DNA of 64,000 bases from Phyllobates terribilis. Taxonomy: Eukaryota. Every line of letters starts with the position of its first letter. Position 1 is the first letter of the stretch. The notes under the pieces are model-generated. The model saw only the letters and a list, made by a program, of their open reading frames with translations. It had not been told where the DNA came from and did no database searches. The position numbers and the translations under genes were made by a program. Of the stretch, positions 1 through 27,122 are shown piece after piece. Where the stretch lies: contig NW_027362764.1 in NCBI RefSeq assembly GCF_046119375.1, positions 802,590,001-802,654,000 on the forward strand, in the 5' to 3' direction.

Positions 1-347
1 TTACCCGCCTGTTACCTGCTGTCTCCATCAGCTCGCTCACCTGGGAGCGCCCGCCAGTTACCTGTCAGGTATCCGCCTCGCCTGTCTACCCAGAGACTGT
101 CCCCGTCACTTGCTGTGACCACCTGCCTGTCTACCCAGAGACTGTCCCCATCACTTGCTGTGACCACCTGCCTGTCTACCCAGAGACTGTCCCGTCACTT
201 GCTGTGACCACCTGCCTGTTTACCCAGAAACTGTCCCCGTCACTTGTTGTGGCTGCCTGCTTGCCTTCCCTGGGAGTCACCTGCTTCCTTACAAGGACTT
301 CCCCCTTGTATTGCAGCTCAGAGGTTCCACCTCCCGGACCCGTAACA
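1..347 (-). mobile_element. Probable LTR-retrotransposon terminus inserted into hAT copy 1
   Basis: Minus strand begins TGTTACGGGTCC (TG terminus). Identity with the hAT transposase starts abruptly at 348. The other end is outside the window. Confidence 0.45.
78..252. repeat. 45-bp tandem repeat, ~4 copies
   Basis: Unit CCTGCCTGTCTACCCAGAGACTGTCCCCGTCACTTGCTGTGACCA read directly. Confidence 0.85.
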
Positions 348-22707: not shown

Positions 22708-23259
<552 letters not shown>

Positions 23260-24828: not shown

Positions 24829-25230
<402 letters not shown>

Positions 25231-25263: not shown

Positions 25264-25279
25264 GGCTCTTCTAAGAGCC
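25264..25279 (+). terminator. Histone 3' stem-loop (H2B)
   Basis: GGCTCT-TCTA-AGAGCC; AAGAGCTG begins 16 nt downstream. Confidence 0.95.
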
Positions 25280-25284
25280 ACCAC

Positions 25285-26064
25285 CCCGTCACTTCAAGAG
25301 CTGCTCCTCACCTGCCTCCTGTAGCTCCATGTCCCGTCACTGCAAGAGCTGCTCCTCACCTCCCTCCTGTAGCTCCATGTCCCGTCACTGCAAGAGCTGC
25401 TCCTCACCTGCCTCCTGTAGCTCCATGTCCCGTCACTGCAAGAGCTGCTCCTCACCTCCCTCCTGTAGCTCCATGTCCCGTCACTGCAAGAGCTGCTCCT
25501 CACCTGCCTCCTGTAGCTCCATGTCCCGTCACTACAAGAGCCGCTCCTCACCTTCCTCCTGTAGCTCCATGTCCCGTCACTACAAGAGCTGCTCCTCACC
25601 TGCCTCCTGCAGCTCCATGTTCAGTGACAAGAGCTGCTCCTCACCTGCCTCCTGTAGCTCCATGTCCAGTCACTACAAGAGCTGCTCCATGTCCCGTCAC
25701 TACAAGAGCTACTCCTCACCAGCCTCCTGTAGCTCCATGTCCCGTCACTACAAGAGCTGCTCCTCACCAGCCTCCTGTAGCTCCATGTCCCGTCACTACA
25801 AGAGCTGCTCCTCACCTGCCTCCTGTAGCTCCATGTCCTGTCACTACAAGAGCCTCTCCTCACCTGCCTCCTGTAGCTCCATGTCCCGTCGCTACAAGAG
25901 CTGCTCCTCACCTGCCTCCTGTAGCTCCATGTCCCGTCACTACAAGAGCCGCTCCTCCCCTGCCTCCTGTAGCTCCATGTCCCGTCACTACAAGAGCTGC
26001 TCCTCACCTGCCTCCTGTAGCTCCATGTCCCGTCACTACAAGAGCTGCTCCTCACCTGCCTCCT
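25285..26064 (+). repeat. 48-bp minisatellite containing the H2B HDE, ~16-17 units
   Basis: Unit CCCGTCACTACAAGAGCTGCTCCTCACCTGCCTCCTGTAGCTCCATGT. Confidence 0.95.
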
Positions 26065-26592
26065 GGCGGGTACGATGTGGAGAAGAATAACAGCCGCCTG
26101 AAGTTGGCCGTCAGGTCTCTGGTCACCAAGGGCGCCCTGCTGCAGGTGAAGGGCAGCGGCGCCTCCGGCTCCTTCAAGCTGAACAAGAAGCAGGAGACTA
26201 AGGACAAACCGGCCAAGAAGAAGCCGGCGGCTGCGGCCAAACCCAAGAAACCCGCAGCCAAGAAAGCGGCCAAATCCCCAAAGAAGCTCAAGAAGGCTCC
26301 GACCGCAGCTAAGAAAAGCCCGAAAAAAGCCAAGAAGCCCGCAGCAGCCGCGGCCAAGAAAGCGGCCAAATCCCCAAAGAAGCTCAAGAAGGCTCCGACC
26401 GCGGCCAAGAAAAGCCCGAAAAAGGTCAAGAAGCCCGCAGCAGCCGCAGCCAAGAGCCCCAAGAAGCCGAAGGCCGCTCCGAAGCCCAAGAAGATGACGA
26501 AGAGCACGGCTAAGAAGGCGGCCAAACCCAAAGCTGCCAAGAGTCCAGCTAAGAAGGCGACTAAAGCCAAGAAGCCCGCGGCTAAGAAATAA
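26065..26592 (+). pseudogene. H1: Histone H1 lacking promoter, ATG, N-tail and first part of the globular domain
   Basis: Starts at [27 protein letters not shown], followed by a K/A/P tail with SPKK motifs and a normal stop. Confidence 0.92.
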
Positions 26593-26622: not shown

Positions 26623-26638
26623 GGCTCTTATCAGAGCC
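26623..26638 (+). terminator. Histone 3' stem-loop (H1)
   Basis: GGCTCT-TATC-AGAGCC; AGAGCTGTA begins 16 nt downstream. Confidence 0.95.
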
Positions 26639-26640
26639 AC

Positions 26641-27122
26641 TACCTTGTCCCTGCAGAGCTGTATGATCAGTGCCACCACCTTGTTCCTGCAGAGCTGTAT
26701 GATCAGTGTCATCACCTTCTCCCTGCAGAGCTGTATGATCATTGTCACCGCCTTCTCCCTGCAGAGCTGTATGATCAGTGCCACCACCTTCTCCCCGCAG
26801 AGCTGTATGATCAGTGCCACCACCTTGTCCCTGCAGAGCTGTATGATCAGTGTCACCGCCTTCTCCCTGCAGAGCTGTATGATCAGTGCCACCACCTTGT
26901 CCCTGCAGAGCTGTATGATCAGTGCCATCACCTTGTCCCTGCAGAGCTGTATGACCAGTGTCACCACCTTGTCCCCTCAGAGCTGTATGATCAGTGCCAC
27001 CACCTTGTCTCCGCAGAGCTGTATGATCAGTGCCACCACCTTGTCTCCGCAGAGCTGTATGATCAGTGTCACCACCTTGTCTCCGCAGAGCTGTATGATC
27101 AGTGCCACCACCTTGTCCCTGC
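26641..27122 (+). repeat. 36-bp minisatellite containing the H1 HDE, 13 full units
   Basis: Unit TTGTCCCTGCAGAGCTGTATGATCAGTGCCACCACC. Confidence 0.95.

Follow-up and report, generated by a model that had tools for sequence, protein, structure and literature searches.

A probable minisatellite seeded from the 3' processing flank of a poison-frog histone H2B gene

Introduction

When the downstream half of a histone 3' processing signal has been multiplied in tandem, do the extra copies work, or has a repeat simply grown out of one working copy? The question is raised by a histone H2B gene in a 64-kb stretch of poison-frog DNA, here called the window, in which a long tandem array follows directly upon the 3' stem-loop of the gene. 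The original prediction, made from the letters of the sequence, took this array for the H2B downstream element amplified into about 16 U7-binding sites. It listed fail-safe or multiple cleavage, concentration of U7 snRNP and termination as possible functions, with a mutational origin as the alternative. We analysed the structure of the array, its predicted pairing with U7 and the variation among its units, and compared it with histone loci of other frogs. The reading that we favour, at a probability of about 60%, is that the H2B array is a lineage-specific minisatellite seeded from the 3' flank of the H2B gene by slippage, in which only the first unit is functional.

Results

Histone genes and stem-loops in the window

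A pattern search of the window returned four histone stem-loops, one at each gene end (H3, H2B, H1 and H4; Table 1). Upstream of the H2B coding region, inspection of the sequence revealed an octamer (ATTTGCAT) together with TATAAATA. The H2B stem-loop was scored by the Rfam Histone3 model at 32.1 bits (E 7.7e-7 in a 2.1-kb search), slightly below the gathering score of 34, and its TCTA loop is also present in H2A/H2B genes of Leptodactylus and Pristimantis. Directly after the stem, the sequence ACCAC (25280-25284) contains the predicted cleavage position, which is placed by the usual rule for the canonical site. The H3 and H4 genes have single downstream elements and are without an array.

Table 1. 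Histone genes, stem-loops and flank-derived arrays located in the window.
Feature	Position	Strand	Basis and remarks
Orphan 45-nt x 4 array	73..260	+	TRF; unit ACCACCT..TGTCTAC..CAGAG(A)CTGTCCCCGTCAC
H3 gene	22849-23259	+	
H3 stem-loop	23289-23304	+	Rfam 35 bits; single HDE ACGAGCTG after it, no array; control
H2B coding region	24850..25230	+	ORF list and sequence; middle masked with N
H2B 3' stem-loop GGCTCTTCTAAGAGCC (GGCTCT-TCTA-AGAGCC)	25264-25279	+	Pattern search; Rfam Histone3
48-nt tandem array, 17 units	25285..26066	+	TRF; hand-made unit table and column variation
Unit 1 of the H2B array (the gene's own downstream element)	25285..25332	+	
Partial H1 (5'-truncated remnant)	26065..26592	+	BLASTP and sequence
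H1 3' stem-loop (GGCTCT-TATC-AGAGCC)	26623..26638	+	Pattern search; Rfam 31.9 bits
36-nt x 13.7 array, from within the H1 stem-loop (loop + 3' arm)	26630..27122	+	TRF
H4 stem-loop	33388..33403	-	Pattern search; no array within 150 nt downstream; control
H4 gene	33750-33436	-	

A 48-nt tandem array begins at the H2B processing site

TRF reported a period of 48 in two rows, 25285-25688 (8.5 copies, 93% matches) and 25684-26065 (8.0 copies, 95%), and division by hand gave 17 units, of which 14 are 48 nt long, one 45 and one 27, the last being cut at 38 nt. Tandem amplification of the H2B downstream element, put at about 16 copies in the original prediction, is thereby borne out. That prediction also had the array start at the cleavage site; it does begin at the 3' processing site, but at 25285 rather than at 25280. 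The period-48 homology sets in 5 nt past the stem, between ACCAC and CCCG, which is 1-2 nt beyond the canonical cleavage position. As had been proposed, unit 1 is the gene's own histone downstream element (HDE): its U7-pairing core, AAGAGCTG, occupies 25296-25303, at a distance of 16 nt from the stem, where an HDE would be expected. Most units keep this core, again as claimed; it is intact in 13 of 17, and the other four deviate only at the last two core positions.

The units differ from one another in an ordered way. Column 10 divides them into sub-families, with T in the first unit, G in the next four and A in units 6-17; an alternating 96-nt higher-order pattern runs through units 2-5, and neighbouring units have variants in common. 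The deletions seen in the 27-nt and the 45-nt unit are multiples of 3. With units of 10-100 bp arranged head to tail, variants among them and a higher-order structure, the H2B array has the make-up of a minisatellite.

Arrays are hard to assemble, and an assembly artefact might have produced the array or the junction at which the H1 remnant follows it. Such an error is very improbable in our judgement: the units carry structured variants and are not identical copies, and 31-mers of the H2B array are present in independent sequencing runs, including many in runs labelled as other organisms. The latter runs have more 31-mers of the stretch in common with it than the mRNA part alone could supply. 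Array 31-mers being common to them, the unit is therefore nearly unchanged beyond one sample. The 253-aa ORF of the H2B array, used as a query for contigs carrying the repeat, gave no match.

H2B, the array and the H1 remnant lie in one reading frame, in which the stop codon of H2B is the sole interruption; the H2B stem-loop is interposed as well. We do not take this shared frame to be meaningful; its chance is estimated at ~0.2, because the unit is open in two of its three sense frames and all indels have lengths divisible by 3.

Two arrays adjoin histone stem-loops, and the 48-nt unit is not scattered through the window

Tandem repeats make up 21.5% of the bases of the window, against 1% at the Xenopus tropicalis locus and 7% at the Leptodactylus fuscus locus, and 13 arrays are at least 300 nt long. 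Two of the four stem-loops, those of H2B and H1, adjoin such an array within +/-8 nt, for which the probability, given the array density of the window, is ~6e-5. Both arrays stand in the sense orientation and adjoin the processing site, in two different gene classes.

The window also contains many transposons (with hAT, LINE and retroelement ORFs) and minisatellites, a setting in which the 48-nt unit could belong to a transposable element or a dispersed repeat that has nothing to do with histone 3' ends. The original prediction had named such an origin as an observation that would speak against it. What was found is different: the unit motif has 16 matches in 64 kb, against 0.48 expected, and all of them fall within the H2B array. 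Moreover, unit 1 is correctly positioned as the H2B HDE, and homologues of the unit are present in the single-copy histone flanks that other frogs have (see below). An origin from a dispersed repeat is hardly credible in the face of these observations.

Downstream of H4, by ~1.1 kb and on the strand of that gene, lies another array (94 nt x 11, window:31247-32286). Its unit has a SINE-like core (..TGTAGACTGTGAGTCCTCGCGGGCAGGGTCCT), and AGAGCTG occurs in the H4 sense in about nine units. We did not count it as a histone-flank array, because this 7-mer is expected by chance in ~1% of units of 94 nt, and large arrays number 13 in the window; its presence is probably fortuitous.

Every unit is predicted to pair with U7, and one stands behind a stem-loop

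The 5' end of U7 was represented by the first 20 nt of human U7, taken from PMC7026596, a human/mouse 5' end that serves as a proxy for the frog's own. AAGAGCTG is complementary to CAGCUCUU of human U7, in line with the pairing that the original prediction had proposed. The duplexes predicted with human U7 ranged from -12.7 to -15.4 kcal/mol for all 17 H2B units, as against -7.0 +/- 2.1 kcal/mol for shuffles, and the mean for 28 genuine frog flanks with the same U7 was -14.7 kcal/mol. In sequence terms, each unit of the H2B array is thus predicted to pair with U7 no less well than a genuine HDE.

These values would be expected if the arrays formed a transcribed platform of U7 snRNP sites, providing fail-safe cleavage or termination or concentrating U7 at the histone locus, and the consistent sense orientation of the arrays next to the processing site in two gene classes points in the same direction, as do the array 31-mers common to runs of other organisms. 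In amphibian oocytes, moreover, U7 snRNP is a constituent of the histone locus bodies, once known as spheres, that are located at the histone genes, and satellites on lampbrush chromosomes are transcribed by read-through (PMC12046345).

The surroundings of the units argue otherwise. No stem-loop was found in front of units 2-17 by pattern search, and no unit scores with Rfam Histone3. A position ~10-15 nt past the cleavage site, after an SLBP-binding stem-loop, is held by unit 1 only. Units 2-17 fail one defining feature of a working site because they have no upstream stem-loop. The words sampled from RNA runs are likewise no more than the mature mRNA part would supply, a weak piece of evidence against a transcribed platform.

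The U7-pairing core is variable in the H2B array and invariant in the H1 array

The original prediction had also stated that it would be refuted if the core positions mutated as freely as the rest of the unit with no effect on processing, and in the H2B array no constraint on these positions was apparent. Compared with the consensus, 5 of 136 core cells differ, against 18 of 646 elsewhere (Fisher p = 0.58, odds ratio 1.3), and 4 of the 17 units have lost perfect U7 pairing. The U7-pairing block of the H1 array gave a different picture, with 0 of 104 cells changed against 27 of 364 elsewhere; counted by events, 0 of 8 core columns and 12 of 28 others had changed (p ~0.05). For both arrays these counts come from small samples of units that are not independent of each other. 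The free variation of the H2B core tells against a platform of U7 sites, and the block unchanged in 13 of 13 H1 units tells in favour of one.

The H1 array and a third candidate array lie apart from intact genes

The H1 gene next to the H2B array is a remnant. Measured against a dendrobatid H1 of 215 aa, it begins at residue 70; it has neither start codon nor promoter and is joined directly to the H2B array. By BLASTP it is identical at 43 of 44 positions to residues 70-113 of H1 of Phyllobates terribilis, and its globular domain is 98% identical to the H1 of Phyllobates terribilis and Ranitomeya. The 175 codons left after the truncation are open, and the lysine-rich tail contains an internal duplication of 96 nt x 2.1 (26252-26455).

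Although residues 1-69 are missing, the remnant has retained its stem-loop and its own array of 13 units. In this array the period-36 homology sets in inside the loop, at ATCAGAGCC, 9 nt ahead of where the stem ends. CAGAGCTG is intact in 13 of 13 full units and CAGAGCTGTATG is invariant in all 13, while the distal unit is degenerate.

At the left end of the window lies an orphan array of 45-nt units, in every copy of which an inserted A interrupts the U7-pairing core. No stem-loop or gene was found upstream of it within the window. Its unit aligns to the H4 flank (z 6-7) and the H2A flank (z 4.5) of L. fuscus, and by this resemblance it may be a third histone-flank-derived array, now decayed. 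This orphan array does not belong to the hAT copy next to it. In the window, hAT-type transposase genes are present in two copies (window:348-1294 and window:40437-43829), one of them an intact 1130-aa ORF; the second copy ends near window position 345 with its first ~330 residues left, and the homology between the copies runs from about 348.

Arrays can thus persist without a working gene, because the H1 remnant keeps its 13-unit array and the orphan array has broken cores. This persistence behind a dead H1 gene, and as an orphan, is not what would be expected of a platform of U7 sites maintained for its function.

Other frogs carry the same flanks in single copy

The histone clusters of X. 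tropicalis (L003), L. fuscus (L004), Pristimantis euphronides (L006) and Mixophyes fleayi (L007) were used as outgroups. An array followed none of the 24 genuine stem-loops in these four genera, so the four do without what a platform of U7 sites would supply. At the E. coqui locus (L005) no histone stem-loop was found, and two AT-rich H1 contigs from Logan (L001 and L002), which have no array behind the stem-loop, were left out of the comparison. In X. tropicalis a tandem array of tRNA genes directly follows the histone cluster (L003:13700-20858; 2.39-kb period, 18 tRNA hits in 7 kb), and three hits of the stem-loop pattern inside this tRNA repeat are false positives.

The units of both poison-frog arrays were recognisable in these single-copy flanks. 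Columns 1-23 of the H2B unit align with a flank of Mixophyes (z 7.8-9.2) and columns 8-39 with the H2B flank of X. tropicalis (z 4.2); the H2B flank of L. fuscus likewise gave z 4.2. The H1 unit is identical to the single-copy H1 flank of L. fuscus at 29 of 30 positions (z 22.5). A common origin of the H1 and H2B units was considered and set aside, their alignment to each other being non-significant (p = 0.10) and each fitting the outgroup flank of its own gene. As judged from these alignments, the H1 and H2B arrays are independent, lineage-specific amplifications of old, conserved processing flanks. The claim that the H1 gene has an array of its own with a different unit, so that two of four genes are affected, holds accordingly: its 36-nt unit fits the flank of the same gene in other frogs.

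The H2B gene of P. euphronides (L006:13120-13192, minus strand) carries a duplication in two copies with a period of 26, starting from the last 2 nt of the stem. It consists of a 12-nt perfect match (CCGCCCACATCT) with 9 of 10 further positions matching, followed by TGT.ACAGAG, and gives this one gene two HDE-like cores. This duplication is an incipient version of the poison-frog arrays that arose independently in another frog family.

The poison-frog H2B flank (window:25279-25306, CCCCGTCACTTCAAGAGCTGCTCC) is closest to the H2A flank of Mixophyes (L007:11105-11133), and not to its H2B flank. This likeness points to an exchange of 3' flanks among the classes of histone genes.

Discussion

The data are consistent with the following course of events. 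A single-copy flank of ~48 nt, reaching from just past the cleavage site through the U7 core and ~30 nt further, gave rise to a head-to-tail duplication that subsequently expanded; in our model the expansion came about through unequal exchange or replication slippage. Unit 1 would still serve the H2B gene, with U7 snRNP pairing to its core and cleavage of the pre-mRNA 4-5 nt beyond the stem-loop, behind ACCA(C). The remaining 16 units would fall in the short-lived downstream cleavage product and drift as passengers. The anchoring of the arrays could be explained if the region of the 3' arm of the stem (AGAGCC + ACCA) tended to have short direct repeats downstream of it that act as slippage substrates. 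The H1 array would have had a separate origin in the same way.

Short direct repeats are a classical substrate for slippage or unequal exchange. In the single-copy H1 flank of Pristimantis, CCAGTGCC occurs exactly 36 nt after the TCAGAGCC of the stem, a distance equal to the length of the poison-frog H1 unit, and a direct repeat of the right spacing therefore existed, or exists, in unexpanded flanks. In several frogs CAGAGC recurs 22-23 nt apart, in the 3' arm of the stem and in the HDE core; the two share this motif because the 5' end of U7 resembles the 5' arm of the stem. The explanation by direct repeats is well supported for H1 only, and for H2B this step is proposed by analogy. A pre-existing repeat with a spacing of 48 nt could not be shown for the H2B array. 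The turnover of the array, with variants shared by adjacent units, the 96-nt pattern and deletions inside the array, fits the dynamics typical of a minisatellite.

Some of our findings go against a minisatellite grown by slippage. The arrays are anchored at stem-loops in a non-random way, in two gene classes and perhaps three; the pairing block of the H1 array is invariant; and the 31-mers of the array are found in runs labelled as other organisms.

The first of these findings could also be accounted for by a site-specific mutational hot spot arising from histone 3'-end biology, through pausing or termination, collisions in S phase, or R-loops, with direct repeats playing no part. The histone genes are heavily transcribed during S phase, the arrays start at the processing site in both H1 and H2B, and the small duplication in Pristimantis H2B arose independently at the same place. 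However, the H3 and H4 genes of the window and the 24 stem-loops of the four other frogs share this 3'-end biology and have no arrays, and the match between the H1 unit length and the spacing of the direct repeat in a single-copy flank makes a special hot spot unnecessary. DNA prone to R-loops has a G-rich non-template strand. The R-loop version is disfavoured because the sense strand is C-rich here (GC skew -0.43 for H2B and -0.20 for H1). Altogether a hot spot of this kind seems improbable to us. The mutational origin that the original prediction had offered as its alternative is thus retained in part: its R-loop form is disfavoured, and the arrays are better accounted for by a simpler process, in which short direct repeats at the stem-loop gave rise to slippage.

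The functions proposed for the arrays have fared less well. Fail-safe or multiple cleavage, concentration of U7 and termination are unsupported, given a core in the H2B array that varies like the rest of the unit and an array that stands behind a dead H1 gene. The idea of a working array of U7 sites is accordingly without support, and for the H2B array it is somewhat contradicted. We consider a transcribed platform unlikely, in spite of the favourable pairing energies. That the poison-frog arrays do real work, whether by capturing read-through transcripts or as an RNA scaffold on which the histone locus body is built, is likewise an improbable proposition.

If the H2B array is indeed a neutral minisatellite, it offers a clean and datable example of a short functional RNA signal seeding a satellite, with the seeding direct repeat visible in related frogs. 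It is also a natural experiment, in which histone genes have either 1 or ~17 potential U7 sites behind them. The effect of extra downstream elements on cleavage, on termination and on the assembly of the histone locus body could be asked in poison frogs; amphibian oocytes are a classical system for such questions.

Full-text literature searches turned up no account of arrays or satellites that go back to the histone downstream element, and a family of tandem repeats made up of the U7-binding half of the histone 3' signal is apparently undescribed. Unit 1 itself conforms to the canonical histone 3' processing signal, with a stem of 6 bp, a loop of 4 nt, ACCA and, at 16 nt from the stem, a purine core that complements CAGCUCUU of U7. 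The canonical signal, however, has its downstream element once, whereas the poison-frog H2B gene has it 17 times, 16 of the copies being without a stem-loop in front.

The nearest known case is the newt Notophthalmus. Its histone clusters, in work from 1981 by Diaz et al. (Cell 24:649) and by Gall et al. (Chromosoma 84:159), reportedly lie within satellite DNA, and on lampbrush loops this satellite is transcribed by read-through. As in the poison frog, amphibian histone genes are there directly flanked by tandem repeats in the path of polymerases that fail to stop. The unit of the newt satellite is reportedly a few hundred bp long, and we know of no derivation of that satellite from a processing signal, whereas the unit of the poison-frog array is the processing flank itself.

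The frog satellite PcP190, which is derived from 5S rDNA, is similar in another respect: a functional region of a multi-copy gene has seeded a tandem repeat family that spreads and drifts. In the poison frog, by contrast, the source is an RNA-processing signal of ~48 nt beside the gene, not the gene body, and the arrays stay at the genes from which they came.
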